DNA from: Octopus sinensis | Lineage: Eukaryota | Assembly: GCF_006345805.1 (NCBI RefSeq) | Contig: NW_021833042.1 | Location: forward strand, 24,268-88,267 | Length of the DNA: 64,000 nucleotides | Direction of reading: 5' to 3' | Shown: positions 1,464 to 55,740 of the stretch, one piece after another | How the letters are laid out: the number at the start of each line of letters is the position of its first letter | How positions within the stretch are numbered: position 1 is the first letter of the stretch | Made by a program: the position numbers and the translations under genes | Notes under the pieces: generated by a model | Seen by the model: only the letters and a program-made list of their open reading frames with translations | Told to the model about the DNA's origin: nothing | The model's database searches: none

Positions 1464-3182
1464 GTTCTGCTTGGCATCTGATATGCTAAATAGAACTGGA
1501 TGCGGATATAAATGTTACGGCAAAACGATCAGCCACCTTTTATATATGGATGACCTAAAACTATACGCTGCAAATGACAAACAGCTGGAAACACTATTAA
1601 AGACAGTTCATGGATTTACCAAAGAAATAGATATGAAATTTGGATTAGAAAAATGCGCCAAAGTAACCATGAAAAGAGGAAAACTAGTTAAGAGTAACAA
1701 CATCACACTAGATAAAACCAATGAAATAAAAGAATTAGACCAAAGCCAAACTTACAAATACTTAGGAATCCATGAACTAGATAAGACACAACACACACAA
1801 ATGAAAGAGAAAATAAAAAAAGAATATTATAGACGAGTTATATCAATACTAAAAACAGAGCTCAATGCTAAAAACAAGATAATAGGTATCAACACTTTAG
1901 CTGTCCCAGTTATAAGTTACAGCTACAATATCCTTAACTGGAAACGAAATGAACTGTCCAAAATAGATAGGAAAACAAGAAAAATACTGACAGGATCTAG
2001 GATGCATCACCCAAAATCTGACATAGAAAGACTATATATACAACGTATAGAAGGTGGTAGAGGCCTTATACAGCTGGAAAACTACTATAAAATAACCACC
2101 ATAGGACTGCAAAAATACCTACTTCAGAAGGAAGGAAAACTGATCCAGATAGCAGCAAAACACGAGCAAAACAAAAAACTGTTCTCAGTATTTAAGGAAG
2201 CTGACAAATACAAACAAGAAATCATACCACCTAATAAACACAAAGAAGAAGAAGAAGATGATGAAGAAACAACAAAAGCTATAAAACAAATGAAATCCAA
2301 ACTAAAAATAGAACAGCAACGAGCCATGATAAAACGATGGCAAGAAAAGCCCCTTCATGGTAAATACTGCACTAAACTAAACGCAAAAGAAATAGACAAA
2401 GAAAAATCCCAGCAATGGTTGAGAAGCTCAGGACTCAAAGCAGAAACAGAGGGATTTTTAATTGCAGCACAAGACCAAAGCCTCCCCACCAGAAATTACC
2501 AAAAACATGTAATGAAAAGAAATATTACAAGTAACTGCAGAATATGTGGAGATGGACAAGAAACAATAAATCATATTATCTCTAGCTGCCAGTCCTGGCT
2601 AAGAAGGAATATATTCACAGACATGACAGAGTTGGAACCTACATACATTGGAAGCTATGCCAACATTATGGAATAACAACAGAAAAAAGATGGTATAGGC
2701 ACACACCAGAAAAGGTCACATACTCTGGGATATGCCGATACAAACAGATAGAGAAATTAAGGCCAACAGACCAGATATAGTTGTCAGAGATCATGAAGAA
2801 AAAAAATGCTTTCTAATTGATGTATCAATACCGGCAGATGACAACGTGTCTCTAAAAGAAATGGAGAAACTCTCAAAATACAAAGACCTGGAAATAGAGA
2901 TAACTAGAATGTGGAACCTGAAAACAGAAACAATTCCTATCATAGTAGGTGCAGTAGGCATGATAAAAAAATATTCAGACAAATACATAACAAAAACACC
3001 AGGACTTACAAACACATATAACATACAGAAAATTGCACTACTAGGCACTGCACACATCCTACGCAGAACACTTTCCATACAATAACCATCAGAGCATCAC
3101 AACAAATCACAGCACATACCCAAGGCACACAGAGCTGCGCTCGGTAGTGAAGTGAAAGCACGCTATAAAAATAAAACTACTG
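1464..3182 (+). mobile_element. 5'-truncated R4/Dong-like non-LTR retrotransposon (RT plus restriction-like endonuclease), frameshifted
   Basis: ORF 1471-2676 has YMDDLKLY, KFGLEKC, GGRGL and the zinc knuckle CRICGDGQETINHIISSC. After a frameshift near 2590 it continues RHD. ORF 2732-3085 has RPDIVV..LIDVSIP..EKLSKYKDL. Flanked by (AAT)n on both sides. Confidence 0.9.
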
Positions 3183-4460: not shown

Positions 4461-4704
4461 TGAAAGAGAACACCACCGACCTGAGAATATCTAAATTTCT
4501 TAAAATCTTTCAATATCGCAAATATCACGGAAAAATTTTAACGGCATCTAATTTTCAGTATCTGATCTCCTTTCTCTGAAGTGTATCCTTGTTACTCATA
4601 TTTAATACACACAACAAAACGTCTAAGTTGCTGTTTCTGGAGATGTCTGAATGAGACTTGGAACAGCTCTTACAAAATAAATCAACAACAACAACAACGA
4701 AAAC

Positions 4705-4705
<1 letters not shown>

Positions 4706-4784
<79 letters not shown>

Positions 4785-5028
4785 AAGAAGAAGAAGAAGA
4801 AGAAGAACAAGAAGAACAAGAAGGAGGAGGAGGAGGAGGAGAAGAAGAAGAAGAGAAGAAGAAGAAGAAGAAGAAGAAGAAGAAGAAGAAGAAGAAGAAG
4901 AAGAAGAAGAAGAAGAAAAAGAAGAAGAAAGAAGAAGAAGAAGAGAAGAAGAAGAAGAAGAAGAAGAAAAGAAGAAGAAGAAGAAGAAGAAGAAGAAGAA
5001 GAAGAAAGAAGAAGAAGAAGAAGAAGAA
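4706..5028. repeat. Compound (AAT)n-(AAG)n microsatellite
   Basis: Read directly from the sequence. Confidence 0.95.
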
Positions 5029-5849
5029 TATTTATTTATGAACGACAAGAACTGAAAGAAATACAACAAAATTCAAAGAAGTTCAAAAGATGAAAGACAA
5101 AAATTACAATAATGTTTTCATCTAAAGTTTAAAAGTCTTCTTGTGTTGATTAGGGTACACCATGTTTCTGATTAGGTATCTCCACAATTGTATTGTTAAT
5201 ATCTGTAGATTCCAGCACCTTCGGTGAGGAACTCTTGGGTTACAGTAGACAATCGAGGTCGCACGTCATGTTTTATCTAAAACCAATCTTACTTCTTTGT
5301 CCATATGTACCTTAAGCAGTATATTATATCGTTGTTAGCCTTACGAAAGAATATGTATTTCATTTTGTTCAGGATGGTAGCTATTTCCTTCATATTGAGA
5401 TGAGCAGTTTGTCAGCAGGGAGTTTCTTCTTTTCCACAGGTTATGAAACTACACTTTATCTCATTAATTTTATTTATTTATATTGCATTGGGTCTTTCGA
5501 AGAAGTGTGCATAAGTCGTTTGGTCTGCATCAGGTCACCAGACTCTTAAGTACATGGCCATATGCTGCTGTGAAGGAGTGCTTCTCGGTCGCTTCTCTTT
5601 TGTTATTGTAGTTGTTGTTAGAAGTGATTGGTTTTTGTCCACGTCAGGGCCAAAGAGTTTGATCGTGACAGTGAGAATTATGTAAATTTGTTTGTCGAAT
5701 CATGGGTTATAGCTATTGTGGAGTTTTGGACGGCAACCTCCATGCTTTGTAGTCTTGTTTCTGGATTTTTCTTTAATATTTTCTTTTTTGTTTTTGACTG
5801 CTGGTCTTGATTCCGCGATATGAAAGAACAGTGTTGATATCAAGGAAAA

Positions 5850-6573: not shown

Positions 6574-8784
6574 TCATTCTTCAAATACATTAATTATCCC
6601 AATGATTTTATCTGATAGGGATATATCAAAATGAAATTTAATATTGAATATCGATAATAATTTTGGTATCATAGACGTCATCAATATTAAGGTAATCCGT
6701 GTGAATCCTGATAAATCCAAATCCTTTCGACTTATTATATTGTTGCAAGCAAAGAAAAAAGATACGATTAGAAATAGCTTTACAATGGATTTAGCAATCT
6801 CGTATCTCAAAGGAAAATGATGGTCAATAATTGTTTTAAACAACTTGACATTAATGAATTCCTGTCCATATTTTGACAGAACTAAATTTGGACGAACACT
6901 TTTCGTAAACTTTATAGTTTGAACTAGTATAGTATGATACTTTTCCTGAATAGTTTTCGTAACTGCAAAACCGTAAACAAAAAACATGGCAACAAACCAT
7001 ATATCGCCAACAGTATCAGGTTTAGCAAGCATTACAATAGCTATTGAAAATGAATAGTTGCAAAGAACTTGGAAAGTTGTAAGAAAAATATAAATCGAAT
7101 CTAAATACCATAATACATAAAAGGGCAACGAAGCGAATGTTAAGATAAGATCAATAATCTTGGAAATATGGTTAGGATTCAAATACATTGGTAAAATATA
7201 GACTTTGAAGTAACTTAAGGGTAAAGTTAGAATCAAATAAACGATTGGGATTCCGTAATAAACGAGGCACAGAAGTAATTCGCAGATAGAAAATACAGCA
7301 AATAAAATCGTGATCGTAATAAATAACCAAAGAAATATGAATTGGCTAAAAATATTTCTCTCGTAGAAATAAAGACAAATTTTCTTTATACGTTTAATCC
7401 AAGTATAAATAATTAAATACCACAAATTTGGGTTTAAAGCCGTAGAAATATTAGCTATCATTATCGTATAAAGTAGATCGTAATCTTCAAGTGTAGAAAT
7501 ATTAAAATTTCCATAGTTCTCTATTAATGTGATATTTTGAATGAGAAATGTGCAAGTTGATCTTTGATGTAATGTACTATAAATGATAGTCTCACTTAAA
7601 CGACTGGGAAGAACGAAGAGAATAAAGTTGAGAAATATATAGATAATTATCCAAAAAAATGGACCCCCGAAAAAACCATCTGTATTTTCATAGCTTTCTG
7701 AGGTTCCTAGAATCATGGCACAATAACCCAATGGAATACGATCATGTAAAAGTATTTTCATCGTTTCATATAAAAATAAATAATGCATTAAAAGATCCAG
7801 GAACATTATTGAAAGAGGAAACATAATAAAAATGAATCTTCTTAGTTTTGAAGCAAAGAAAGTGGAATGGTGAAAACAAAATAACCAAGATAGAAAATGA
7901 GAGAAAGTGTAAATATTATGTTTTTCATTGATCCATTCTAATTTGTGTGGCAATGTGTAGTTAATTCTAAATAAGAATTCATCGTTAGCTAATTGTTGCT
8001 GGTTAAGTTCTCGAGAATATGAAGGTAATTTAAGTTTTGATACAAAACTAACAAGCAATGGAAATATGGCCCACAGAACCGCCCCAACAATATTTTCATA
8101 ATTAACAAACATACTATTTTCAATGATGTTTCCAGAACAAATGGATTTCGGTTCATAAGTGCGTTTTTCATTCTTATGTAGTTCACAGCAATAGTTTTTC
8201 AGTATCTCTCGATTTATACCCAATCTTCTGTATGTTATTAACGTATAAGGGCTGTTCTTCTGTATATCATGCGACAAATTTATAAAAAAGCACATGTATC
8301 CAGATTCTCCCATTTGCAATTTATCGATAAATACGATTCTCTTTAATTCCTCGAAAATAAAAAATATTACATCGTGTCTCTGAATATTTTGTTTCCCACA
8401 ATTTATATCGATAACAATACTTGGAGTAGCAACGTAAACATCTAATATATTAAATGAATGAATTGAGAAGTCATAGTGAAAATTTTTATACGCTACTAAA
8501 CCATCTGGTTTATCTGGAATCCATATGAAATGCCTCGCATTTGCATAATAATCCAGTGGTACAGGATTGAGAAGCCCATCCAGTGTTTTATCAGCTATAT
8601 GGACTTCGAAATTGAAAACCAGTTTACCTGATTTTACTAAACGAGTTAAAGTTTGACTGACATTAGGAGAAATTTTAATTTCACAATTATTTCCGAGTCC
8701 TTTCGCATCTATGTTTAGTGATGTAAGTGAGATAATAAGGGTCATTGATAAAAGAAGTGCTGTTACCATATGCATGACAGCCAT
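6574..8784 (-). CDS. Orphan multi-pass membrane protein, paralog 1 (736 aa, single coding exon)
   Basis: Long stop-free ORF with a hydrophobic signal-like N-terminus, an ectodomain of about 200 aa with Cys residues and NxS/T sites, then about 9-10 hydrophobic segments. Colinear paralogs at 35-38 kb and 51-53 kb. Confidence 0.9.
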   Translation of the reverse strand: MAVMHMVTALLLSMTLIISLTSLNIDAKGLGNNCEIKISPNVSQTLTRLVKSGKLVFNFEVHIADKTLDGLLNPVPLDYYANARHFIWIPDKPDGLVAYKNFHYDFSIHSFNILDVYVATPSIVIDINCGKQNIQRHDVIFFIFEELKRIVFIDKLQMGESGYMCFFINLSHDIQKNSPYTLITYRRLGINREILKNYCCELHKNEKRTYEPKSICSGNIIENSMFVNYENIVGAVLWAIFPLLVSFVSKLKLPSYSRELNQQQLANDEFLFRINYTLPHKLEWINEKHNIYTFSHFLSWLFCFHHSTFFASKLRRFIFIMFPLSIMFLDLLMHYLFLYETMKILLHDRIPLGYCAMILGTSESYENTDGFFGGPFFWIIIYIFLNFILFVLPSRLSETIIYSTLHQRSTCTFLIQNITLIENYGNFNISTLEDYDLLYTIMIANISTALNPNLWYLIIYTWIKRIKKICLYFYERNIFSQFIFLWLFITITILFAVFSICELLLCLVYYGIPIVYLILTLPLSYFKVYILPMYLNPNHISKIIDLILTFASLPFYVLWYLDSIYIFLTTFQVLCNYSFSIAIVMLAKPDTVGDIWFVAMFFVYGFAVTKTIQEKYHTILVQTIKFTKSVRPNLVLSKYGQEFINVKLFKTIIDHHFPLRYEIAKSIVKLFLIVSFFFACNNIISRKDLDLSGFTRITLILMTSMIPKLLSIFNIKFHFDISLSDKIIGIINVFEE

Positions 8785-8970: not shown

Positions 8971-9351
8971 GTGAAAGCTGTACAAGGCATGTACATGTGT
9001 GTTCTTACTAAGTTAAGAGTTAGTCTTGAATACAGTGACGAATTTAGGGTACAGGCAGGTGTGCAGCAAGGTTCGCTCCTCAGCTCCCTCCTATTCATCA
9101 TCGTCCTCCAGGCCATAACAGAGCAATTTATTACTGGAAGCCTATGGAAACTACTATATGCTGATTATCTTGTAATCATAGCAGAATGTGTAAGAGACCT
9201 AGAGAAGAAATTCCAGGTGTGCAATCAAAACCTGGAGTCAAAGGGTCTTAACGTTAATTTAGCAAAGATCAAAGTCCTAATGAGCAAGAAATCGGAGGGA
9301 AACCAGACACTTCCTGTAACTGACCCTCCTCAATATGTAGAAAAGGTGTAG
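8971..9351 (+). mobile_element. RTE-like LINE RT fragment
   Basis: GVQQGSLLSSLLFIIVL..LLYADYLVII..GLNVNLAKIKVL. Confidence 0.8.
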
Positions 9352-9861: not shown

Positions 9862-9900
<39 letters not shown>

Positions 9901-9919
9901 AACTTGGTATTTATTCTAT

Positions 9920-10200
9920 CGGTGTCTTTGTTGAACAGCTATGTTACGGAGATGTAAACACACCAACACCGGTTGTCAAGCAGTGGTTGTGGGCAAACAC
10001 AGACGCAAAGAAACGCACACACACATATATATATATAGATATGCATGCGAGAGGCTTATTTCAGTTTCCGTCTTTCAAGTTTAAGCTTCCTGAGGCTAGA
10101 GTAGAAAATGCTGGCCCAAGGTACCATGCTGTGAGAATGAACCCGGAACCATGTGGTCAGGAAGCAAACACATTGCCACACAGTACACTGCGCCTATATT
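9920..10200 (-). mobile_element. Degenerate tRNA-derived SINE (family A)
   Basis: Matches the family A head and core seen at 23522-23927. Confidence 0.6.
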
Positions 10201-15157: not shown

Positions 15158-15400
15158 GCAGGAGTGGCTGTGTGGTAGTAGCTTGCCTAACACACACCAC
15201 TCCTACGACTGTGGCTGTATGGTAAGTAGCTTACTTACCAGCCACATGGTTCCGGGTTCAGTCCCACTGTGTGGTACCTTGGGTTAGTGTCTTGTACAGG
15301 CTATGATAGGAGACACTTGTCCAATGTGCCATGCAGGGGGACTGAACACGGAACCATGTGGCTGGTAAGCAAGCTACTTACCACACACCCACTCCTGCGT
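15158..15400 (+). mobile_element. tRNA-derived SINE family A, duplicated heads
   Basis: ggagtggctgtgtggta..ggttccgggttcagtccc, plus an inverted head fragment at about 15345-15400. Confidence 0.65.
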
Positions 15401-16560: not shown

Positions 16561-17612
16561 TTGTAAGAGGAGAGGCTCGGGAATTATATAAAGACGACTC
16601 GCTATCTATATTGAGAAGAAGTAGTAGCGTGGAAATGGAGAGAAGTAAGAAAAAACTAGATTTTTAAAAAAATCTCAACGAAGAGAATTTCGAGTTTTTC
16701 CAAACTATACATGCATACATACATACATGCATGCATGCATGCATGCATACATACATACATACATACATACATACATACATACATACATACATACATAAAT
16801 ATATACATACATACATATATACATGCATACGTACATACACAAATGCGTGTATATAAAAAAGGGAAGGAGTATTTAGTAGATCAAGAATAAAGGAATTGTA
16901 TTTTTTTGTGTGGCTGTTTTAGGGTGAAGCGGGGTCACAAAACCCTGTTAATAGCAAACGTACATGTCAACAAGTCTACATACCAATATGGTCACACACA
17001 CACACAAACATGTATTTAGTTTTTACACTGTGTACACACATAAACACACGTCCTAACTACAGAACTCAGAAGAAAACAAACACATAAAAAAAGAAATGAT
17101 TTCATAAGCATACTCTTTGTCTTCACACACAATCCCAAAACCTATGACATTCTCAATACTACTAAAAGATGTCTCCCAGTTCTTAAACAGTCATCAAAAA
17201 TGAACAAACTAATGACAAAATCAGAAAAAATATATAGCTGACGCCAAGCAACCAAATTAAAAGACTTTTTAACAAAAATCAAGATTTACAATGAGAGGCG
17301 TAAAATCTTAGCAGGTAGACATGAAGGAATCAACCGAGGAAGGAAGAGAAAATCTTCTCAAATATTCTGTGCAACAGGCTGTAGCGATGCGAAGGGAAAA
17401 AATGTGGAAATGTTGACTGTAGCGTAGAGCATAGTGCACGCAACTGCAGCAGAGAACGGTCGACGCCTCTCGCAATAGAAGTCATTAAAATAAAGAAAAG
17501 ACAGAAAAAGGGAAACAAAATATAAAAATCTACTGTAGAGTTACTTTGAAATTTCAGCATAGGTGGAAACTTTTTTAAAACAATTTAAAAAAAAAAAAAA
17601 TCAATGTGCTAT

Positions 17613-17730
17613 GCTTACGGCACCAAGGTTTCCGAAGCGGTCACCCATCTAAGTAATGACTAGGCTCGACGTTGCCTAACTTCGGTAACCGGACGAGAAC
17701 CGGTGCTTTCAACGTGATATGGCCGTAAGC
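17613..17730 (-). rRNA. 5S: 5S rRNA gene, type 1 (GCTTAC...GTAAGC), copy A
   Basis: 118 nt, full 5S sequence with box A and box C, perfect helix I, long oligo-T at 17601-17585. Confidence 0.9.
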
Positions 17731-18474
17731 AATTGTCAGCTCGAAGTTTAACAACTTTATTCTAATAAACGACTAAATGCTAACATTTATATTCTCTTAC
17801 AATGTAAACTTGCTTTCGTCACAATCTTTACGTCTCTACACTGCTTTTCTTCTACCAGCTCACTATTGCATCGACTAAGCAATCTTTCTTTTATTCTAAC
17901 TCCCATTGTTCACCACTAGCGGCTACCCTCACGCTTACTCACTCTCTCGCTTTCAGATTTCACTTTGCCGCTGACAATTTGATCAATAGGCCTTCACTGT
18001 CGCACCACACTACCCTTGCTGCTGCTACGTCCCCATCTTACCCACAAATGCTCCTCAACACAACGTCGCACACGTCATCACAAACATTTGCTCTGGCTAT
18101 CCACACCAATAGCAAATACCTGAGCATCATCCTAACACGACGCTCGTCAAAACAACAACGTCCAACACTTAGCAAAATTATCGCAGCTTGCGTGATTGAC
18201 GCTTTTTCAATTCACTTCCGTCGACATTATGCTTGTGGAAACTACTCTCTCGCTGCATATTGCTAAAACTCGCATCAAGTTTACTCACTGGTGCATAATT
18301 GGACACTTGGCAGCGAGCAATGTAAGCAAGGTAAGTAACGAATGCTGCTAATGACAACAATCCTAATCAAATGTATGCTAATTTGAATGCGACAGGCAAG
18401 CAAAGACAAAGCCACAGATTTGCTATCTTCACATGGTATATCAAATAAAAACGTTCTAATGACTCGGCTCTATC

Positions 18475-18568
18475 GTTTACGGCCATATCACATCAATGAA
18501 GTTAAGCAAATTCGAGCCTAGTTAGTACTTAGATGGGTGACCGCTTGGGAAACCTAGGTGCTGTAAAC
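18475..18568 (+). pseudogene. 5S: 5S rRNA type 2 pseudogene with a 24-nt internal deletion, copy B
   Basis: GTTTACGGCCATATCAC joined to GAAGTTAAGC. Lacks CCGGTTCTCGTCCGATCACC. Confidence 0.85.
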
Positions 18569-19903
18569 GTCTTTCTCTCTCTTTATTTTCGATTTATTCT
18601 TGCAGTCTTCTCCACTTCAAGTGCATGTCTGCTTTCACTTCGAACAAAAATTATACATATTTGCACGCACCAATTTCCATGCTTTACTCTCACTGCACTT
18701 GCGCAGCTCTATTTTGCCAAATGAAATCACTGTTTACCAATGTTTATTTTGTCTTTCAGTCGTAGCCACCGCTCGCCTCAAGGTTCAACCAGCTTTCACT
18801 AATTCAGCCACATACACAACAAAAAAACACACACACATACACAACAATCACACACACAAACAAAAAAAATACACACACGCACACACATACACAACAAAAA
18901 CACACACACACAGGTAATCGGTCCGTAAGTCAGGGATAACATTGAAATAAACAAGCCTTTGAAGACAGAAAACAGAAGACTGAAAAGGATGAATAACACA
19001 GCAAGTGAATTGAGGTCAAAACAGAGAATACGATTGGTTAAAATTCGAAGAATTAAACTACGTAAAAAGTAGAAATTACGTTTTTCTCAAAAAAACTAAT
19101 TGAAATTAATGTTTTCTTTTGACACATTCTACCAGTATGCGAAGTTTCAAATTATTTATTTAAAAGGGAAAATCTGTCCGAATAAAACCGCGTTTTATTT
19201 TACACACATCTCAGCATCGTTGGCTTTGTCTTTGCCGGCCTGTCGCATTCAAATTAGCATACATTTGATTAGGATTGTTGTCATTAGCAGCATTCGTAAC
19301 TTACCTTGTTTACATTGCTCGTTGCCAAGTGTCCCATCATGCACCAGTGAGTAAACTTCATGCGGGCTTTAGTAATATGCAGCGAGAGAGTAATTTCCAC
19401 AAGCATAGTGTCGATGGAAGTGAATTGAAAAAGCGGCAATCACGCAAGCTGCGAAAATTTTGCTAAGTGTTGAACGTGGTTGTTGTGGCGAACGTGGTGT
19501 AAGGATGATGCTTAGGTATTTGCTATTGGTGTGGATAGACAGAGCAAATGATTGTGATGACGTGTGCCACGTTGTGGTGAGGAGCATTTGTGGGTAATAT
19601 GGGGACATAGCAGCAGCAGGGGTAGTGTAGTGCGACAGTGAAGGCCTATTGATAAAATTGTCGGCGACAAAGTGAAATCTGAAAGCGAGAGAGTGAGTAA
19701 GCGTGAGGGTAGCCGCTAGTGGTGTACAATGGGAGTTAGAAGAAAAGAAAGATTGCTTAGTCGATGCAATAGTGAGCTGGTAGAAGAGAAGCGGTGTAGA
19801 GGGGTAAAGATTGTGTCGAAAGCGAGTTTACATATTAAGAGAAAAAAATGCTAGCATGTAGTCATTTATTAAAATAAAGGTGCTAAAGTGCGAGTTGATA
19901 ATC

Positions 19904-20021
19904 GCTTACGGCCATATCACGTTGAAAGCACCGGTTCTCGTCTGATCACCGAAGTTAAGCAACGTCGACCCTAGTCAGTACTTAGATGGGTAACCGCTTG
20001 GGAAACCTAGGTGCAGTAAGC
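19904..20021 (+). rRNA. 5S: 5S rRNA gene, type 1, copy C
   Basis: 118 nt GCTTACGGCCATATCACGTTG...GTGCAGTAAGC with a downstream T run. Flanks are the inverse of copy A. Confidence 0.9.
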
Positions 20022-20757
20022 AGAGTACATTGTTAAATTTTTTTTTTCTAAATTGTTTTAAAAAAGTTTATGAGTTTCCACCTATGCTGAAATTTCAACG
20101 TAACTCTACAGTAGATTTTATATTTTGTTTCCCTTCTCGTGTCTTTTCTTTATTTTAATGACTTCTATTGCGAGAGGCGTCGACCGTTCTCTGCTGCAGT
20201 TGCGTGCACTATGCTCTACGCTACAGTCAACATTTCCACATTTTTTCCCTTCGCATCGCTACAGACTGTTGTACAGAATACGTGAGAAGATTTTCTCTTC
20301 CTTCCTCCGTTCATTGTTTCATGTCTACGTGCTATGATTGAACCCCTCTCATTGCACATTTAGTTCATTCCTAAAATAATCGACTAAGTAGGACAGCCGA
20401 TCAAATTCACTCTGTCAATATGTATGGGTAAAACGAAGTTTAAGCATGAAGCAGGAATCCGCAGGGTGGCGAATGTGCTGAGGTAAGTGCAACCTACACG
20501 TTTGCTAGAAGACTGTGGCTGAATTAGTGAAAGCTGCATGAAATTTGAGGCGAGCTGTCACTACGACTGAAAGACAAAGTAAACATTTGTAAACAGTGAT
20601 TTCATTTCGCAAAGTAAACGTCTGCAAGTGCAGTGAGAGTAAAGCATGGAAATTGGTGCGTGCAAATATGTATATTTTTTGTGCGAAGCAAAAGCACACA
20701 TACACTTGAAGTAGAGAAGACTGCAAGAATAAACCGAAAATAAAAAGACAGAAAGAT

Positions 20758-20875
20758 GTTTACAGCACCTAGGCTTCCCAAGCGGTTACCCATCTAAGTA
20801 CTAACTAGGCTCGATTTTGCTTAACTTCGGTGATCGGACGAGAACCGGTGTTTTCAAAGTGATATGGCCGTAAAC
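20758..20875 (-). rRNA. 5S: 5S rRNA gene, type 2 (GTTTAC...GTAAAC), copy D
   Basis: 118 nt, full length, T5 about 12 nt downstream. Flanks match copy B. Confidence 0.9.
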
Positions 20876-21639
20876 GATAGAGCAGCGTCATTAGAACCTT
20901 TTTATTTGATACACCATGTGAAGATAGCAAATCGTTGCGTAGTGATGCATTGTATTATAGAGTTTTATTTTACTCACATCTCAGCATCTGTGGCTTTGTC
21001 TTTGCCGGCCTGTTGCATTGAATCTAGCATAAATTTGATTAGGATCGTTGTCATTAGCAGCATTCGTAACTTACCTTGTTTACATTGCTCGTTGCCAAGT
21101 GTCCCATCATGTACCAGTGAGTAAACTTGATGCGTGCTTTAGTAATATGCAGCCAGAGAGTAATTTCCACAAGCATAATGTCGATGGAAGTGAATTGAAA
21201 AAGCGGCAATCATGCAAGCTGCGAAAACTTTGCTAAGTTTTAGACGTTGTTGTTGTTGATGCTTAGGTATTTGCTATTGGTGTGGATAGCCAGAGCAAAT
21301 GTTTGTGATGACGTGTGCCACTTTGTGTTGAGGAGCATTTGTGGGTAAGATGGGGACATAGCAGCAGCAGGGGTAGTGTAGTGCGACAGTGAAGGCCTAT
21401 TGATAAAATTGTCGGCGACAAAGTGAAATCTGAAAGCGAGAGAGTGAGTAAGCGTGAGGGTTGCCGCTACTTGTGTACTATGGGAGTTAGAATAAAAGAA
21501 AGATTGCTTAGTCGATGCAATAGTGAGCTGGTAGAAGAAAAGTAGTGTAAAAATGTGAAAATTGTTACAAAATAGTGTTTACATTGCAAAATTTGGTTCG
21601 TTGTGTCGTAGCCCTTTCGTTTTCTTTTCAGGTGATACC

Positions 21640-21985
21640 ATGGCGCTGTGGACGATAGAGTTTTGCATGTTTGCCTGCGATAGTTACTTGAAAAATATCG
21701 AGTCTCTCATATCAGTTGAGCGTGAGTTTTGTCGCTACTTCAACATTTACCAAAATCAGGCTGTTTCCACTGTAACACAATCTTATGTTGGATAAATGCA
21801 CTTCGTACAAGAGGTGCACTAATGAATAGGAAACTGGTGAGGGTGCCACCCCGGAAAATGTGGAATGCATCAGACAAGCTTTGATACGGAGTGTGATTCG
21901 CTCTGCTCAGAAGAATTCCATTGAATTTGGCATCGCCAATCGATCGCTAAGGCGTATTTTGAATGAGGACCTGCAATTCGACCTG
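21640..21985 (+). mobile_element. Tc1/mariner transposase N-terminal HTH fragment (DUF4817-like)
   Basis: MALWTIEFCMFACDSYLKN..VEREFCRYFNI, then PENVECIRQA and ELGIANRSLRRILNEDLQF in shifted frames. Confidence 0.65.
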
Positions 21986-23521: not shown

Positions 23522-23927
23522 ATATATATACATATATATATAGGAGTGGCTGTGTGGTAAGTAGCTTGCTAACCAACCACATGGTTCCGGGTTCAGTCCC
23601 ACTGCGTGGCATCTTGGGCAAGTGTCTTCTGCTATAGCCCCGGGCCGACCAATGCCTTGTGAGTGGATTTGGTAGACGGAAACTGAAAGAAGCCTGTTGT
23701 ATATATGTATATATATGTATGTGTGTGTTTTGTGTGTCTGTGTTTGTCCCCCTAGCATTGCTTGTGTGTTTACGTCCCCGTAACTTAGCGGTTCGGCAAA
23801 GGAGACCGATAGAATAAGTACAGATCTTACAAAGAGTGAGTCCCGGGGTCGATTTGCTCGACTAAAGGCGGTGCTCCAGCATGGCCACAGTCAAATGACT
23901 GAAACAAGTAAAAGAGTAAAAGAGAAT
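23522..23927 (+). mobile_element. tRNA-derived SINE family A, near full length
   Basis: A/B-box-like head, cttgggcaagtgtc core, internal (TA/TG)n, tail gactgaaacaagtaaaagag. Confidence 0.8.
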
Positions 23928-23991
23928 ATATATATATATATTATATATATATATATATACACACATATATAGACATGCATATAAATGCATT

Positions 23992-24309: not shown

Positions 24310-24541
24310 CTCTCTTTCTCTTTTACTCTTTTACTTGTTTCAGTCATTTGACTGCGGCCATGCTGGAGCAGTGCCTTTAGTCGACCAATTCGACCCCGGG
24401 ACTTATTCGTTGTAAGCCCAGTACTTATTCTATCGGTCTCTTTTGCCGAACCGCTAAGTGACGGGGACGTAAACACACCAGCATCGGTTGTCAAGCAATG
24501 CTAGGGGGACAAACACACAAACACACAAACACACACACACA

Positions 24542-24616
<75 letters not shown>

Positions 24617-24785
24617 CATATATACGACAGGCTTCTTTCAGTTTCTGTCTACCAAATCCACCCACAAGGCATTGGTCGGCCCGAGGCTATAGCAGAAGAC
24701 ACTTGCCCAAGATGCCACGCAGTGGGACTTAACCCGGAACCATGTGGTTGGTTAGCAAGCTACTTACCACACAGCCACTCCTGCG
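24310..24785 (-). mobile_element. tRNA-derived SINE family A, near full length, tail-to-tail with the previous copy
   Basis: Reverse complement of 23522-23927. Confidence 0.8.
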
Positions 24786-24889
24786 CCTATGTAAAAAATT
24801 TTATAAAAATATTTTATAAAAAATTTTATAAAATTCACAAATCCATTACCAATCTTATAAGCCGGAGCCGTCCCTAAAATGCTCCATTC

Positions 24890-26403: not shown

Positions 26404-27641
26404 TATGGGTAAATTATTGTAATCTGATAATTTCGCGCGTGCACATTGTTTGTTTTTAATTTTGTCAACTACAATGAATATAAGGGTCAGGTGGCACCCT
26501 CTGTGAGAAAAACAGCATCATGACGCAATCCCTCTGCCAAAAATTTGGGAACGACATGCTGTACTGCTAGGTATTCGCACCGGAAGCTCCAATACGGACA
26601 TATAAGAGTGTTTGGGTGTTAATCTGAGGACAGTACAGTGGATTCGAAAAGAGTTGAATGAATCTAATGGGGATTTCGAAGGTATGGCAGCTCGGAAAAC
26701 TCACTCTAATGCTTCTGGTAAGAGAATAACTCCTGAATTTGCTGGTGAGTTCCAGGCCATGATTCACAGCGATCTCTGCAAGTCAATCAGGTCCATTGCC
26801 AGGGACATAGGAATTCTTGAGTTTCTTATCAGGCAGATATTGCATGAAGACATTCGGTATTCCTCATACAAGATGAAAATGGGCCAATTTTTATCCCAAG
26901 CCATCAAGGACAATAGGAAAAATTGCGTTACGAAGCCTTTGAACAAACTGAAGTATCCCCTCCGACCGAACATGCATTGGTTTTCCGCAGAGGAGAAAAA
27001 TTTGTCAGGATCAGATGATGAAGACACAGAACAACTGTTTACTTGCCGTCTCTCCAAAGCATGTACCGAGAGTGGTAAAAATTAAACATCCAGTCAACAT
27101 CATGGTGTTTGGAGTGATCACTAGTGATGGTGACGTTATGCCTCCATTCATCTTCCCACACAGCCTGAGACTCAACACGGAGGCCTACATCAAATGTCCG
27201 GAGACGGTAGGGCTGCTCTGGATGAAAAGGGTGACTGGTGGAAGACCTTATGTCTGGCAACAAGACTCTGCACTATGCCACACAAGCAGGATAGACTATG
27301 CATGGCTGTCAGTCAATTTCTGCGACCACATCACCCTTAACATCTGGCCAAATAACTCCCCAGACTGCAACCCCTTTGAGTATTATGTGTGGGTTGCAGT
27401 TGAGCGAGTGACCAACAAAACTCCTTGTAACGCCAAAGATGAACTGAAGGCAAGGACTTTGGCAGATTTCACCAACTTAAACAGGAAGACCGCCCAGAAG
27501 AGTCGCATGAGATTCCGAAGTCGTCTGGAGGCTGTGGTTACAGCCAATGGCGATTTTATTAAAATGATTTTATTAAAATAAGGTGTCAGCGCTATTTTCA
27601 TTTTTGTGTAATTTAGACGACAGTTTATTTACCGCACCCTG
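26400..27641 (+). mobile_element. Degenerate Tc1/mariner transposon, DD37-spaced (maT-like)
   Basis: ORFs 26612-27085 and 27015-27581: IMVFGVITSDG, VWQQDSALCH, WPNNSPDCNPFEYYVW. Right TIR ends ..accgcaccctg|TA. Confidence 0.8.
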
Positions 27642-35436: not shown

Positions 35437-38079
35437 TTATATGTTATTGCAAGCAAAGAAAAAAGATACGATTAAAAATAATTTTACAATGGCTTTACCA
35501 ATCTCGTAACTCAAAGGAAAATACTCGTTAACGATTGCTTCAAACAATTTGGCATCAATGTATTCCTCTTCATATTTTAACTGAACTAATTTTGGTTTTA
35601 TAGTTTTGGTAAACATTATTGATTGAACTAGTATCCCTTTATAATGTTCCTGAATAGCGTTCATAACTGTAAAAGCGTGAACGAAAAACATGGCAATAAG
35701 CCATATACCACCGACAGTATCAGGTTTAGCAAGCATTGCAATAGCTATTGAAAATACATAAGTGCAAATGATTTGAAAACTCATAAGAAATACATAGCCT
35801 GAAGCAAATGCCCATAATATAAAAAACGGCAATGACGGCAATGATAAAATTTTATCAGGACACTTGGAAGGATATATATTTTTCTTCATTAGAGGTAAAA
35901 TATATTTTTTGAAATAACTTAATGGTAAAGTTAGAATCAAATATATGAATGGGATTCCGTAATAAACGAGGCGGAGAAGTAATTCACAGATAAAAAATAC
36001 AACAAATAAAATTGTAGCCAAAATAGGAAGCAAACATAATATAATTTTTATAAAAATATTACTCTTGCAGAAAATAGTCCACATTTTATGTATACGCGTA
36101 ATCCACTTAACAAATATAGATTTCCAGAAATATGGGTCGGCAGCAATGAAAACTTTAACTTTAATTATTGCAAGGAGTCGATCATAACCCTGAAGTGTAG
36201 AAAAAGAATCTTCTTTGAGTTTTGTATCTAATATACTTTCAGCGATAATCTCACTTAAATGACTGGGAAGAACAAACAGGATAAAGTTAAAAATTATGTA
36301 GCTGATTATCCCCAAAAAGGGACCCCAAACAAAACAATCTGAAAGTTCATAGCTTTTCTGGATTCCTAGAATGAAGGAGCGATAACCCAATGGAATGCGA
36401 TCATGTAAAAATATTGTCACCGTTTCATATAAAAATAAGTAATACATTAAAAGATCTAGAAGAATTACTGAGAGAGAAAGCAAAATAAGAATACCTCTTC
36501 TTAGTCTTGAAACAAACAAAGTCGAATAATGAAAACAAAACAACCAATATAAAAAATGAGAGAAACTGTAAATATTATGTTGTATACTAATCCATTCTGA
36601 TTTGTCTGGCAATGCGTATTTACATAGATATTCATTGTTAGGTAATTGTTGCTGGTGAGGTTCTAGGGAGTTTGGCGATGTGTCTTCATTTTGAGAATTT
36701 AATCTCTCGTTAGTTGACTGTTGCTGGTTAGGTTCTAGGGAATTCGGCGATGTGTCTTCATTTCGAGAATGCACTTCCTCGTTAATTGATGGTTGCTGGT
36801 TAGGTTCATTTGAATTTGGTGATGAGGGTAGAATTTCCAAATGCACTTCCTCGTTAGTTGATTGTTGATGGTTAGGTTCTAGGGAATTTGGTGATGAGGG
36901 TAGAATTTCCAAATGCACTTCCTCGTTAGTTGATTGTTGATGGTTAGGTTCTAGGGAATTTGGTGATGAGGGTAGAATTTCCAAATGCACTTCCTCGTTA
37001 GTTGATTGTTGATGGTTAGGTTCTAGGGAATTTGGTGATGAGGGTAGAATTTCCAAATGCACTTCCTCGTTAGTTGATTGTTGATGGTTAGGTTCTAGGG
37101 AATTTGGTGATGAGAGTAGAGTTTCCAAATGCACTTCCTCGTTACCTGATTGTTGCTGGTTAGGTTCATTTGAATTTGGTGATGAGGATAGAGTTTCCAA
37201 ATGCACTTCCTCGTTAGTTGATTGTTGCTGGTTAGGTTCATTTGAATTTGGTGATGAGGGTAGAATATCCAAATGCACCTCGTCGTAACCTGATTGTGGC
37301 TGGTTGCAGGAATACGGAGGTAATTTAGCTTTTGATATAAACCTGATAAACAATGGAAATATGGCCAACAGAACTGCTCCAACAACATTTGCACAATTGA
37401 CAAACATACTGTTTTCAATGGTATTTCCAGAACAAATGGATTTTGGTTCATAAGTAGTATTATCATTTTTATGTAGTTCACAACAATAATTCTTCAGTAT
37501 CTCACGATAAATACCCAATATTCTGTACGCTAATAACGTATAAGGACTGTTCTTCTGCATGTCGTGCGACAAATTTATAAAGAAACACATATATCCAGAT
37601 TCTCCCATCTGCGATTCATTGATAAATACGATTCTCTTTAATTCCTCGAAAATCGAATATATTACATCGTATCGCTGAACATTTTGTTTTCCACAATTCA
37701 TATCGATATCAATACTTGGAGTAGCAATGTAAGCGTCTAATATATTAAATGAGCGAATTGAAAAGTCAAAGAGGACATTTTTATACATTACTAAACCATC
37801 TGGTTTATCTGGAATCCATGTGAAACGTCTCGCATTTGCAAAATAATCTAGTGGCACAGGATTGAGAAGGCCATCAATTTTTTTATCAATTATATGGACT
37901 TCAAAATTGAAAACTTGTTTGCCTGATCTTACTAGACGAGTTAAATTTTTAATGACAGTGGGAGAAATTTCAGTTGTACAATTATTTCTGTGTTCTTTTG
38001 CATATGTGTTTAGTGATGTGAGAGAAATAATAAGGATGACTGATAAAAGAGGTGCTGTTACCATCTGCATGACAGCCAT
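35437..38079 (-). CDS. Orphan multi-pass membrane protein, paralog 2 (880 aa, repeat-expanded, C-terminally truncated as assembled)
   Basis: Colinear with paralog 1. Stops at CNNI*. The homologous tail continues in a shifted frame to a TGA at 35266-35264. Confidence 0.85.
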   Translation of the reverse strand: MAVMQMVTAPLLSVILIISLTSLNTYAKEHRNNCTTEISPTVIKNLTRLVRSGKQVFNFEVHIIDKKIDGLLNPVPLDYFANARRFTWIPDKPDGLVMYKNVLFDFSIRSFNILDAYIATPSIDIDMNCGKQNVQRYDVIYSIFEELKRIVFINESQMGESGYMCFFINLSHDMQKNSPYTLLAYRILGIYREILKNYCCELHKNDNTTYEPKSICSGNTIENSMFVNCANVVGAVLLAIFPLFIRFISKAKLPPYSCNQPQSGYDEVHLDILPSSPNSNEPNQQQSTNEEVHLETLSSSPNSNEPNQQQSGNEEVHLETLLSSPNSLEPNHQQSTNEEVHLEILPSSPNSLEPNHQQSTNEEVHLEILPSSPNSLEPNHQQSTNEEVHLEILPSSPNSLEPNHQQSTNEEVHLEILPSSPNSNEPNQQPSINEEVHSRNEDTSPNSLEPNQQQSTNERLNSQNEDTSPNSLEPHQQQLPNNEYLCKYALPDKSEWISIQHNIYSFSHFLYWLFCFHYSTLFVSRLRRGILILLSLSVILLDLLMYYLFLYETVTIFLHDRIPLGYRSFILGIQKSYELSDCFVWGPFLGIISYIIFNFILFVLPSHLSEIIAESILDTKLKEDSFSTLQGYDRLLAIIKVKVFIAADPYFWKSIFVKWITRIHKMWTIFCKSNIFIKIILCLLPILATILFVVFFICELLLRLVYYGIPFIYLILTLPLSYFKKYILPLMKKNIYPSKCPDKILSLPSLPFFILWAFASGYVFLMSFQIICTYVFSIAIAMLAKPDTVGGIWLIAMFFVHAFTVMNAIQEHYKGILVQSIMFTKTIKPKLVQLKYEEEYIDAKLFEAIVNEYFPLSYEIGKAIVKLFLIVSFFFACNNI
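36637..37284 (-). repeat. Nine in-frame 72-bp tandem repeats (EEVHLEILPSSPNSLEPNHQQSTN-type)
   Basis: Unit length counted directly (atgcacttcc recurs at 36841 and 36913). The central units are identical. Confidence 0.95.
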
Positions 38080-51295: not shown

Positions 51296-53448
51296 TGTAA
51301 AATAACTTGCTCTCGGATTCATTTCATTTTCCAAATGTTTTGTTTCAATAACATTGTCTAACAGAGGTTTCTTAAAAGGAAATTTAGTAGTAATTTTCGA
51401 CAAAAATTTAGGTATCGCAGAAGTCACCAACATCAAGGCAATCCGTGTGAATGTTGATAGACCCAAATCCTTTCGACTTATTATGTTATTGCAAGCAAAG
51501 ATAAAAAGATACGATTAGAAATAGTTTTACAATGGATTTACCAATCTCGTGTCTCAAAGGACAGTGTTTGTTAACGATTACTTTAAACAACTTGGCTTTA
51601 ATGAATTCCTCTCCACATATTGACAGAACTAAATCTGGGTGAACAGGTTTGGTTAACTGTATAAATTCAACAAGAAATACGTAGCTTGAATAAAATGCCC
51701 ATGCTATATGAATTAGCAATGACATCAACGATAAAATTACAATAACACACTTGAAAATATGACTACGTTTCTCATAGAGAGGTAAAATATACACTTTGAA
51801 ATAACTTAATGGTAAAGTTAGAATCAAATATACGAAGGGGATTCCGTAATAAACGAGACACAGAAGAAATTCGCAGATAGAAAATACAGCAAATAAAATC
51901 ACAATAAAAGGAAAAAAAATATAAATTTTGGAACATTTTTATCCCATTTTTTTTATACGTTTAATCCAAGTACTAAATAGTAAGTACCAGAAATCTGGGT
52001 TTGCAGCAACAGAAATATTAGCTTTCATTATTGCAAGGAGTCGATCATAATCCTGAAGTGCAGTAACATTCAAATTACCATACTCCATTAAAATTTTTTT
52101 ATCTTTAATGAGAAATGTGCAAGTGGATTCTTGATATAATGCATTATAAGCAATAGTGTCACTTACACGACTGAGAAGAACTAAGAGAATAAAGTTAACA
52201 ATTATGTAACTGATTATCCCAACAATAGGATTCAAAACAAAACTACCTGAAAGTTCATTACCTTTCGGGATTCCTAGAATGGAGGAGCGATAACCCAACG
52301 GAATACGATCGTGTGAAAATATTGTCAACGTTTCATATAAAAATAAGTAATACAGTAATAGATCCAGGAGAATTTCTGAGAGAGAAAGCAGAATAAGAAA
52401 GCCTCTTCTTAGTCTTGAAACAACAGTAGTCGAATAATGAAAGCAAAATAACCACGATGAAAAAATGAGAAAAACTGCAAATATCATGTTTTACACAAAT
52501 CCATTCCGATTTGTCTGGCAATGTGTGTTCAATTGTAAATTCATCGTGATGTAATTGTTGCTTGTTAGATTCAGGGGAATCTGGCGATGCGTGTTCAATT
52601 GACAAGACGACTTCCTCGTCAGCTGATTGTTGCTGGTTAGGTTCACTGGAATTTGGCGATGTGTTTTTAGTTGGCAAAGAGTGGTTAGCTGATAGTGGTA
52701 ATTTAGCTTCTGATACAAAACTGATGAATAATGGAAATATAACCCACAGAACTGCTCCAACAATATTTGCACAATTGTCAAACATACTATTTTCAATGAT
52801 ATTTCCAGAACAAATGGATTTCGATTCGTAAGTGTGCTTATCATTTTCATGTAGTTCACAGCAATGGTTCTTCAGTATCTCTCGATTTATACCCAATCTT
52901 CTCTATGTTGATAACGTAGAAAGGCTGTTATTCCTCAAGCGACGCGACAAATTTATAAAAAAACACATATATCCGGATTCTCCCATCTGCAAGTTATCGA
53001 TAAATACGATTCTCTTTAATTCTTCGAAAATCAAACTTACCGAATCGTATCTCCGAATATTTTGTTTTCCACAATTTATATCGACAACAATATTTAGAGA
53101 AGCAATGTAAAAGTCTAATATATTAAATTAATGAACTGAAAAATCAAAGAGGACATTTTTATACATTACTAAACCATCTGGTTTATCTGGAATCCACATG
53201 AAATGCCTCGCATTTGCAAAATAATCCAGTGGTACAGGATTGAGAAGATCATCGAGCTTTTTATCAGCTATATGGACTTCAAAATTGAAAACCAGTTTGC
53301 CTGATTTTACTAACCGAGTTAAATTTTGACTGACATTAGGAGAAATTTTAATTTCACAATTATTTTCGAGGTTTTCCGCTTGTATGTTAATGATTGATGT
53401 CAGTGAGATAATAATGGTGATTGATAAAAGAAGTGCTTTTACAATATG
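51281..53448 (-). pseudogene. Orphan membrane protein paralog 3, pseudogene
   Basis: No ATG or acceptor. TAA at 53130-53128, TAG at 52905-52903, frameshifts near 52460, 51940 and 51505, and a deletion of about 55 aa in the TM region. Confidence 0.9.
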
Positions 53449-55068: not shown

Positions 55069-55103
<35 letters not shown>

Positions 55104-55740
55104 TACGATGGGCTTCTTTCAGTTTCTGTCTACCAAATCCACTCACAACGGTTTGGTCAGCTCGAGGCTATAGTAGAAAACACTTGCCCAAGGTTTGATT
55201 CAGTAAGACTGCATCTCAAACCATGTGGTTGGGAAGCAAGTTGTTTTACCACGCCTTTGTTCGATAAAATTTAAATGCCATTTTTTAATTATGAGTATTT
55301 AGGAGACTGTACAGAGACGAATTATATTGTTGTAAACTCTTACGTATTTCCTTATACAGTGCGCATGGTAAAATAACTTCACCACTATTTCTATGGGGTC
55401 AATGTATCCAGTTTTTCTCCGCTGCTCAGACAGAATGGAAAAATGCAACACCATTTTATAGGGATTCCAAGAATGGTAGGAGAACGAAAGCAATCTCAGA
55501 TCATTGTTTATGCTAAAAATGACAACTAAATATCCCTCATATCATCCCTTAAATTTTTAGAAAAGGATACATTGGATAGAAACTTTCGAGTGGGCATTAC
55601 ATATCTATAAACAGGGTAGTGGTCGGAGATGGATTGCTTCGTATAATAGAACTGCTTATTTAAGGTTGACCTGCGGCTAAACAATAGCATCAGTACCAAC
55701 GACCACAACAGCATCAACAATAACAAGAAATAATAATAAT

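Follow-up and report, generated by a model that had tools for sequence, protein, structure and literature searches.

Four 5S rRNA genes of two variants in a probable relic cluster of Octopus sinensis

Gene content and layout of the locus

The window, a 64 kb stretch of Octopus sinensis DNA analyzed here, contains four 5S rRNA genes (A, B, C, and D), which lie in the strand order −, +, +, −. An Rfam covariance-model search assigned all four to family RF00001 with scores above its curated gathering score of 38 bits, thus confirming the four genes that a first-pass annotation had placed here. No further 5S rRNA match was found by Rfam in the 64 kb window, even at E≤1. Gene D (20757–20875, minus strand) is of type 1 and has the top score of the four, 111.9 bits. 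Gene C (19904–20022, plus strand) is a full-length type 2 gene scoring 103.3 bits. Gene A (17612–17730, minus strand) is also of type 2 (GCTTAC...GTAAGC) and scores 94.5 bits, and gene B (18475–18569, plus strand) is of type 1 (GTTTAC...GTAAAC) and scores 58.2 bits with 29 model positions skipped. On the Rfam 5S structure, 34 of 34 pairs are standard in A, 33 of 34 in D, and 32 of 34 in C (96.8 % of cells paired). Genes A, C, and D have the full-length three-way-junction fold with helices I–V; B does not.

Genes A and B are arranged head to head, and their 5′ ends are separated by a spacer of 744 bp (17731–18474), in agreement with the approximately 745 bp proposed at first pass. Gene A is followed on its strand by the type-2 3′ flank (flankA, 17285–17611, minus strand), which is approximately 91 % identical to 20023–20360 in inverted orientation and has its outer homology boundary near 17285. 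Gene B is followed by the type-1 3′ flank (flankB, 18570–18812, plus strand), approximately 89 % identical to 20514–20756, again inverted. These parts make up unit 1. A filler (18813–19191) made of a CA-rich microsatellite (~18813–18910) and AT-rich sequence leads to the inverted units, and sequence comparison showed no homology between this filler and the 5S repeat units.

Unit 2 opens with an inverted copy of the spacer (19192–19903), which is cut off ahead of the expected type-1 gene. It is an inverted repeat of 17787–18419 (92 %) and a direct repeat of 20962–21584 (90 %). The tail-to-tail interval between C and D (20023–20756) consists of a flankA copy (20023–~20360), a unique junction (~20361–20513), and a flankB copy (20514–20756). 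Beyond D, the inverted spacer copy of unit 3 (20876–21589) is cut off ahead of the expected type-2 gene; it contains inverted repeats of 17797–18419 (90–92 %) and a direct repeat of 19192–19833. The recurrence of the spacer in inverted form beside C and D thus holds at 90–92 % identity. The two partial inverted units described earlier are also present, but they are not separate pieces, since both abut as a head-to-tail junction. An ORF at 21562–21795 was considered as the start of a transposon truncating unit 3 and was dropped for want of Pfam support.

Units 2 and 3 are contiguous through this single head-to-tail junction, and unit 1 is inverted relative to both. The direct repeats of units 2 and 3 are spaced by 1751–1770 bp. 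The repeating head-to-tail unit therefore contains two opposed genes with a period of approximately 1.77 kb, and the gene order within this composite repeat alternates between head-to-head and tail-to-tail. This is not the layout of a classical tandem array, in which one-gene units follow each other head to tail in one orientation. The outer homology ends coincide between copies (~17285 with 20360, and 18812 with 20514). There is one tail-to-tail junction at the locus, and its core of approximately 150 bp is unique; compared with the sequence outside unit 1, it showed no homology beyond chance. Because of this single junction and its unique core, it is not proven that the locus is a tandem array in the strict sense and not a set of three segmental copies.

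In general, 5S genes are driven by internal Pol III promoters. All four copies carry an AATAAA box at exactly −31 (−31 to −26): 17756–17761 (minus) for A, 18444–18449 (plus) for B, 19873–19878 (plus) for C, and 20901–20906 (minus) for D. Apart from this box, the sequences upstream of the genes do not align between the types. Downstream, counted from the 3′ end of the gene, a T14 run starts at +12 in A (17587–17600, minus strand, an A-run on the plus strand), a T4 run at +17 in B (18586–18589, plus), a T10 run at +16 in C (20038–20047, plus), and a T5 run at +11 in D (20742–20746, minus). Every copy thus has both a TATA-like element around −30 and, past its 3′ end, at least four consecutive T. 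Within the spacer, Rfam gave no snRNA gene and no other RNA family at E≤1 besides low-complexity miRNA-like noise, and no tRNA was found. A 95-aa ORF inside the A/B spacer has no Pfam domain and no homologue, and the concatenated translations of seven spacer and flank ORFs gave 0 matches in the protein collection. The first-pass annotation had the two genes sharing one bidirectional spacer. No function could be demonstrated for such sharing, and given the internal promoters of 5S genes in general and the separate AATAAA box at −31 of each gene here, this proposal is unsupported or overstated.

Two gene types with compensated base pairs

Genes A and C represent type 2, and genes B and D represent type 1. 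In the gene alignments, the types show approximately seven fixed differences, and the type-diagnostic positions are 2, 18, 25, 60, 61, 73, and 117. Positions 60 and 61 fall in a region that probably matches box A in the internal control region of Xenopus. Between the types, homology is lost within 1–2 nt of the gene borders, which bears out the proposal of two 5S types with type-specific flanks. Each of the two sequence classes thus has flanking DNA of its own; the classes do not occupy separate arrays or loci but alternate within the composite unit, and every copy at the locus links the two types in opposite orientations.

On the Rfam structure, two pairs are changed on both sides between the types: 2:117 (C–G in one, U–A in the other) and 18:60 (G–C and U–A). 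At a third pair, 25:52, the change is one-sided, from G·U to A–U. In simulations with 7–9 random substitutions, at least two compensated pairs arose with P of about 0.0006–0.002. The helix I compensation suggested at first pass is real. The co-variation suggested for helix II stands by half: 18:60 is compensated, but 17:61 is broken in type 1, where C–G has become C·A or C·U. All the helix strings quoted in support are present, except that the 3′ helix described as common to both types reads CCTTGG in gene A, not CCTAGG. Gene C has helix mismatches at 7:112 (G·A) and 66:109 (C·U). The canonical fold energy is −17.3 kcal mol−1 for type 1 versus −22 to −24 kcal mol−1 for type 2.

For an outgroup, metagenome contigs were scanned by exact pattern with GYTTACGGCCATATCAC, yielding 75 loci, 12 of which hold real 5S genes. 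All 12 are non-cephalopod (crustacean-like) and served solely as outgroup. With this outgroup, type 2 appears derived at 2:117 and type 1 at 18:60, and for helix II the type-2 state seems to be the ancestral one. The two compensatory pairs are explained if selection acted on the RNA fold during the divergence of the variants.

Decay and constraint at the locus

Gene B has an internal deletion of 24 nt (positions 18–41) that removes half of helix II, the 5′ strand of helix III, and loop C; by its sequence, it is a pseudogene. Gene A has six private substitutions (42, 44, 55, 75, 97, and 106), three of them at highly conserved positions, in UAAG, in AGUAC of loop E, and in CUGGGA, and it is probably a pseudogene as well. 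The sole complete head-to-head pair at the locus, A/B, thus combines the two poorest copies. Partial decay of the cluster, as suggested at first pass, is borne out.

Within type 2 (A versus C), the genes differ at 10 of 119 positions (8.4 %) and the flanks at 77 of 1004 (7.7 %; p=0.72). Within type 1 (B versus D), the corresponding values are 6 of 95 (6.3 %) and 83 of 902 (9.2 %; p=0.45). These tests rest on 119-nt genes and hence have low power. The within-type divergence of the genes is far from the near-identity of copies homogenized by concerted evolution. When private changes are counted per lineage, A, B, and C match the spacer rate, and solely D lies below it. Gene C has 2–3 private changes versus 2.6 expected at the spacer rate, and D has 1–3 (one clear) versus approximately 5.4 expected from the unit 3 spacer (P about 0.03–0.2), both counts having low power at this gene length. 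Gene D is the best-preserved copy; it alone looks intact and may be functional, and the functional status of C appears marginal. Because 119-nt genes give little power, C and D are not firmly classed as functional or dead. Current selection at the locus is not evident, and no clear constraint is seen, because the genes have diverged within each type as much as their flanks, B carries a deletion, and A is hit at conserved sites. The structural selection proposed at first pass is supported between the types, where compensation is above chance, but is not evident among the copies here.

The host belongs to the sinensis/vulgaris complex of Octopus, with nucleotide identities of 99.5 % to O. sinensis contig VCDQ01000806.1 and 97–98 % to O. 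vulgaris OX597818.1. The orthologous loci compared (O. vulgaris OX597818.1; O. sinensis VCDQ01000806.1 and CM016863.1) end 3.4–9 kb short of the cluster, and the paralogue loci in O. bimaculoides and O. sinensis, reached via neighboring genes, contain no 5S. The 5S comparison within octopus is thus one of four copies at one locus. We found nothing specific to cephalopod or octopus 5S rDNA in the literature searched; a 1984 study by Ohama is said to concern the 5S RNA of O. vulgaris.

Origin of the cluster and comparison with known systems

The locus is probably a small, 'orphon'-like relic of 5S rDNA built from a two-variant composite segment, with copies that are drifting. It is an unusual layout within a well-known gene family and not a new kind of system. 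The building block is a composite segment of approximately 1.5 kb with two old 5S variants in opposite orientation, arranged as type-2 3′ flank, type-2 gene (−), spacer of approximately 745 bp, type-1 gene (+), and type-1 3′ flank. Three copies of it are present, a complete one (17285–18812) and two in the opposite orientation that adjoin head to tail and are each truncated at the far end (19192–20360 and 20514–21589). The spacer shared by the two genes would be the outcome of an ancestral inverted duplication and not a common promoter, and each gene would be an independent RNA polymerase III unit with a putative internal control region, an AATAAA box, and a T-run 11–17 nt downstream. The variants would first have diverged under selection on the fold, and the copies at this locus would now drift at the neutral rate, leaving B dead, A very likely dead, C marginal, and D perhaps still functional.

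The compensation between the types can also be read as the mark of a dual 5S system that is functional and under structural selection, comparable to the oocyte and somatic genes, in which both variants are maintained together in fixed divergent linkage and are maybe differentially expressed. The two compensatory pairs and the improvement from G·U to A–U would fit such a system, as would the probable location of differences 60 and 61 in the counterpart of box A, the apparently derived state of each type at a different pair relative to the crustacean-like outgroup suggests constraint in both lineages, both types have retained the −31 box and the T-runs, and the top Rfam score belongs to a type-1 gene. 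We nevertheless consider this reading rather unlikely: at this locus the genes diverge as fast as the flanks, half of the four copies are defective, among them both genes of the only complete head-to-head pair, the C·A or C·U at 17:61 in type 1 is uncompensated, and the types are interleaved, whereas known dual systems have separate arrays. It is more doubtful still that octopuses (perhaps coleoids) maintain two functional, obligatorily interleaved 5S variants, both in ribosomes and possibly stage- or tissue-specific. The broken pair 17:61 and the weaker canonical fold of type 1, the deletion in B, and the ancestral look of helix II in type 2 would agree with type 1 being a dead lineage of inverted copies within the spacer of a conventional type-2 repeat, comparable to the inverted copy or pseudogene reported for the type I unit of tilapia, with no second functional variant. 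This is improbable, as D outscores every type-2 copy, the U18–A60 pair specific to type 1 is a compensated one, and the AATAAA box at exactly −31 and the T5 terminator are retained. Moreover, flanking sequences can no longer be aligned between the types, whereas their genes differ at some seven sites only, which implies long purifying selection on both.

It is very improbable that the segment is a mobile element with 5S-derived sequence, such as a 5S-derived SINE, a Cassandra-like LTR element, or a transposon. The outer homology boundaries do coincide, and transposable elements are abundant in the window. However, inspection of the ends by eye revealed neither terminal repeats nor a poly(A) tail or target-site duplication, the outer flanks show no relationship with one another, and searches with the ORFs inside the segment gave no protein homologues. 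No copy or fragment of the segment occurs in the rest of the 64 kb window or across 133 kb from other loci of octopus. Elements of the 5S-derived SINE or Cassandra-like kind couple a 5S-related head to a LINE-related or unrelated body ending in an A-rich tail, or hold 5S sequence within LTRs, and are dispersed with target-site duplications; no further copies were seen in the window or at five additional octopus loci. Instead of 5S heads fused to a LINE tail, the segment has full-length 5S genes complete with features of promoter and terminator.

In its present state, the locus chiefly offers a clean case of a 5S cluster decaying by birth and death, and it is of use for annotation in flagging B and A as pseudogenes. 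If the alternating two-variant unit were the main form of the octopus 5S array, the variants would have been kept distinct in spite of a physical interleaving that exposes them to gene conversion, and the ribosomal RNA of an invertebrate would be heterogeneous like that of frogs and fish. Positions 2, 18, 25, 60, 61, 73, and 117 would then be diagnostic sites for RNA data. With a true dual system, octopus would provide an invertebrate parallel to the oocyte/somatic genes of vertebrates, linked instead of in separate arrays.

The type I unit of tilapia (Oreochromis niloticus) 5S rDNA, reportedly described by Martins et al. in 2002, is said to carry in its spacer a pseudogene and a 5S gene in inverted orientation. 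The octopus repeat resembles the unit so reported in having more than one 5S sequence per unit, one of them inverted, and pseudogenes among the copies. It differs in that the opposed genes of the octopus, a cephalopod mollusc, are distinct variants with compensatory pairs and their own promoter-proximal boxes. In pike (Esox), inverted blocks of 5S tandems are known (PMC5437419), and 5S segments likewise occur in both orientations at the octopus locus, unit 1 versus units 2 and 3. The Esox blocks are large, homogeneous, and inverted whole (PMC5437419), whereas the octopus locus has four gene copies and inversion also within the unit. The dual oocyte/somatic 5S genes of Xenopus and fish, and the two 5S rDNA classes of fishes, differ between classes at a handful of positions and have class-specific flanking DNA (PMC6562748), as here. 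The vertebrate classes occupy distinct arrays or loci and are differentially expressed (PMC6562748), whereas the octopus classes alternate in one composite repeat, whose copies at this locus are in decay. In bivalve molluscs and barnacles, 5S rDNA evolves by birth and death, with variant types and pseudogenes (PMC3215682). Their units have one 5S gene and are sometimes linked to snRNA genes (PMC3215682), unlike the octopus spacer, which has no snRNA or other RNA gene. The octopus cluster shares with them divergent spacer types, conserved genes, pseudogenes, and copies that are not homogenized (PMC3215682).

The 5S genes and their repeat unit

An Rfam scan of the whole 64-kb window yields four 5S rRNA matches, and no more, that exceed the gathering score: gene D (20757-20875, minus strand, 111.9 bits), gene C (19904-20022, plus strand, 103.3 bits), gene A (17612-17730, minus strand, 94.5 bits) and gene B (18475-18569, plus strand, 58.2 bits). 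With E-values of 1e-9 to 8e-24, these are genuine 5S matches, far beyond chance. At a permissive E≤1 the scan of the window gave no extra 5S gene, only low-complexity, miRNA-like noise from TA/CA microsatellites, and ARAGORN found no tRNA genes in the window.

Self-comparison of the window showed that the cluster is built from one segment present in three copies. Unit 1 is complete (approximately 17285-18812) and consists of a type-2 3' flank (17285-17611), gene A on the minus strand, a 744 bp spacer between A and B (17731-18474), gene B on the plus strand and a type-1 3' flank (18570-18812); type 2 comprises A and C, and type 1 comprises B and D. An unrelated stretch of 380 bp, CA-rich and AT-rich, follows, and then come two further copies of the segment in the opposite orientation. 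Unit 2 consists of a spacer (19192-19903), gene C (plus) and a type-2 flank (20023 to approximately 20360), and is truncated about 86 bp short of the expected type-1 gene start. Unit 3 consists of a type-1 flank (20514-20756), gene D (minus) and a spacer (20876-21589), and is truncated about 66 bp short of the expected place of the type-2 gene. The two are joined via approximately 150 bp of unique sequence, and a distance of 1751-1770 bp separates their spacers, which are direct repeats of each other (families D4 and D5 of the self-comparison). On the minus strand, units 2 and 3 join head to tail as copies of a composite unit whose two genes are opposed; gene order is therefore alternately head-to-head, across a spacer of about 745-800 bp, and tail-to-tail, across 734 bp. 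The first-pass annotation, made by reading the sequence alone, had correctly described one complete unit and two partial, inverted ones, but overlooked that the two partial ones lie side by side, defining the repeat's tail-to-tail half.

A and B, the two defective copies, form the sole complete head-to-head pair. The best-preserved two, C and D, lie tail to tail and come from different truncated units. Comparison of the whole 64 kb gave no further unit fragments, and no unit pieces were present in approximately 133 kb of other octopus loci, among which the orthologous loci reached via neighbouring genes end 3.4-9 kb short of the cluster.

Two gene types and their transcription signals

Helix I reads GCTTAC...GTAAGC in type 2 and GTTTAC...GTAAAC in type 1. 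A and C agree with each other and differ from D at sites 2, 18, 25, 60, 61, 73, 102 and 117 of the 119-nt gene; the difference at 102 is private to D, sites 18 and 25 lie within a deletion in B, and site 112 is variable too. On the Rfam consensus structure, type 2 has C-G at pair 2:117, G-C at 18:60 and G.U at 25:52, and type 1 has U-A, U-A and A-U, respectively. At 17:61, type 2 has C-G, and the type-1 genes have C.A (D) or C.U (B). Compensation had been claimed for both helices. It is confirmed in helix I, where both sides of 2:117 changed; helix II is compensated at 18:60 but broken at 17:61 in type 1, and is thus only half compensated. In a simulation placing 7-9 random substitutions on the 119-nt gene, at least two compensated pairs arose in 0.06-0.2% of trials. 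In a slide control of the pair counting, only the correct register gave pairing; the shuffle control is uninformative with the four sequences.

As a distant outgroup, we used a set of 12 crustacean-like 5S genes that came from metagenome contigs, marine and other (L051, L007, L044, L075, L053, L055, L017, L049, L005, L037, L039 and L003). They are eukaryotic, near crustacean-type 5S, and contain the Pollicipes primer sequence ATCACGTTGAAAACACCGGT. Compared with these 12 genes, the state of type 2 seems to be the derived one at 2:117, and that of type 1 at 18:60 and 61. This would give each type lineage one compensated change, a suggestion at most, since the 12 include both states of helix I (GTTTAC...GTAAAC and GCTTAC...GTAAGC).

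Similarity between the types is lost no more than 1-2 nt from the gene ends (17611-17728 versus 20756-20873), and the upstream and downstream regions are otherwise unalignable, which bears out the claim that each type has its own flanks. The observation as a whole is confirmed.

An AATAAA box lies at exactly -31 to -26 in all four copies (A, 17756-17761; B, 18444-18449; C, 19873-19878; D, 20901-20906). A TATA-like upstream element is established for many animal 5S genes. We read the box as a putative element of this kind, because we estimate the chance of any one hexamer at any one position at about 1/1000 in the local base composition. Downstream, runs of at least four T start at +12 in A (T14), +16 in C (T10), +11 in D (T5) and +17 in B (T4), which would predict a short 3' trailer on the transcripts. 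With its own -31 box and T-run, each gene thus looks like a self-contained putative Pol III unit. No finding points to the spacer as a shared bidirectional promoter. A scan to E≤1 detected no other Rfam families within it, and its ORF of 95 aa lacks both Pfam domains and homologues.

Decay of the copies and genomic surroundings

Gene B has lost positions 18-41 (24 nt), which leaves it unable to form helices II and III. Gene A carries six private substitutions, three of which hit highly conserved (upper-case) Rfam positions in UAAG, the loop E AGUAC and CUGGGA. In C, two private changes and the one at site 112 produce mismatches (G.A and C.U) at the ends of helices I and IV, and D has a single clear private change, at a variable position. 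Counted as substitutions, type-2 genes diverge (A versus C) at 10/119 sites and their corresponding flanks at 77/1004 (Fisher p 0.72); for type 1 (B versus D) the figures are 6/95 and 83/902 (p 0.45). A three-way spacer comparison gave private rates of 4.0% (unit 1), 2.2% (unit 2) and 4.5% (unit 3), and the private gene-change counts of A, B and C fit the rates of their units. D has 1-3 changes versus 5.4 expected (Poisson P approximately 0.03-0.2). These figures argue that, since the unit duplication, there has been neither homogenisation nor clear purifying selection on the genes, with D as a possible exception.

At position 89, A (17642) and B (18539), of the same unit and different types, both carry the ancestral G; in C (19992) and D (20787), which are neighbours and again differ in type, the base is a derived A. 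Gene conversion between opposed genes could have left this pattern, and so could a parallel G-to-A change.

The window is eukaryotic and AT-rich (30-42% GC), with abundant microsatellites, SINE copies and retrotransposon fragments. Over positions 25254-48040, the DNA shares 99.5% identity with contig VCDQ01000806.1 of O. sinensis; identity of the window is approximately 98% to CM016863.1, an O. sinensis chromosome, and 97-98% to OX597818.1 of O. vulgaris. These matches place the source in the O. sinensis/vulgaris complex of octopuses. Three tandem paralogues of an octopod-restricted, intronless, multi-pass membrane protein family lie on the minus strand (6574-8784, 35437-38079 and approximately 51340-53445), and the 5S cluster sits between copies 1 and 2. 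Copy 1 is an intact, intronless ORF of 736 aa with octopod protein matches only. Copy 2 is 98.4% identical to O. sinensis LOC118761507 and has an expanded 24-aa repeat (NEEVHLEILPSSPNSLEPNHQQST, about five or more copies). Copy 3, split into several ORFs, is a probable pseudogene. In one source the family is named 'receptor for retinol uptake STRA6'; it has no Pfam match. In O. vulgaris OX597818.1, model P0018 (23 kb) combines the N-terminal portion of one paralogue with the C-terminal portion of a second, and P0019 (approximately 136 kb) fuses a gelsolin gene to a family member; both look like annotation chimeras. A SINE-like repeat (GTGGCTGT.TGGTAAGTAGCTT...GGTTCCGGGTTCAGTCCCACTG) occurs in both orientations (15211-15396, 23541-23952, 24315-24800, 55069-55252 and 9899-10199) and is also abundant in an O. 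bimaculoides locus (L001). Transposable-element remnants lie at 1471-3085, 8971-9351 and 26612-27581, all on the plus strand; two are reverse-transcriptase fragments (RVT_1, zf-RVT), and one is a frameshifted DDE-transposase-like ORF pair with a weak DDE_3 match under the Pfam cutoff. At 4581-5093 lies a purine-rich, low-complexity tract of approximately 500 bp, which is not a gene; in one frame it translates into long homopolymer runs of N/K/E/R, and on the opposite strand into runs of S/F/L.

History of the cluster and known 5S systems

We conclude that a 5S rDNA cluster has here been rearranged and has decayed, and that its unit is unusual in holding two variants in alternating orientation. 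The two types no longer share recognisable flanks, and their genes differ at about seven sites, two compensatory. This implies that both variants probably spent a long time under constraint, with the 5S RNA fold and the Pol III signals maintained. A likely later phase of neutral decay at the cluster is implied too, because within types genes and flanks diverge alike. In the simplest history, an ancestral inverted duplication would have created the two-gene unit, which may then have been copied, perhaps within a tandem array; the cluster would later have been rearranged by one inversion and two truncations and left to decay. The birth-and-death model describes such a history for the 5S rDNA of molluscs and crustaceans (PMC3215682). 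The earlier interpretation is thus partly supported: a 'structurally selected dual system' is backed as history, by the compensation and the conserved -31 box, but not as a present-day function of the cluster, where genes diverge like flanks. The cluster would be more noteworthy if a genome census and RNA data revealed two functional, interleaved 5S variants.

No account of 5S rDNA organisation in octopus was found in the literature searched. In tilapia, Martins and co-workers reportedly described in 2002 a 5S repeat unit that likewise contains inverted 5S copies and pseudogenes. Pike 5S tandems occur in inverted blocks (PMC5437419), a precedent for the inversion in the octopus cluster. The dual 5S classes of amphibians and fishes have class-specific flanks (PMC6562748), as do octopus types 1 and 2.
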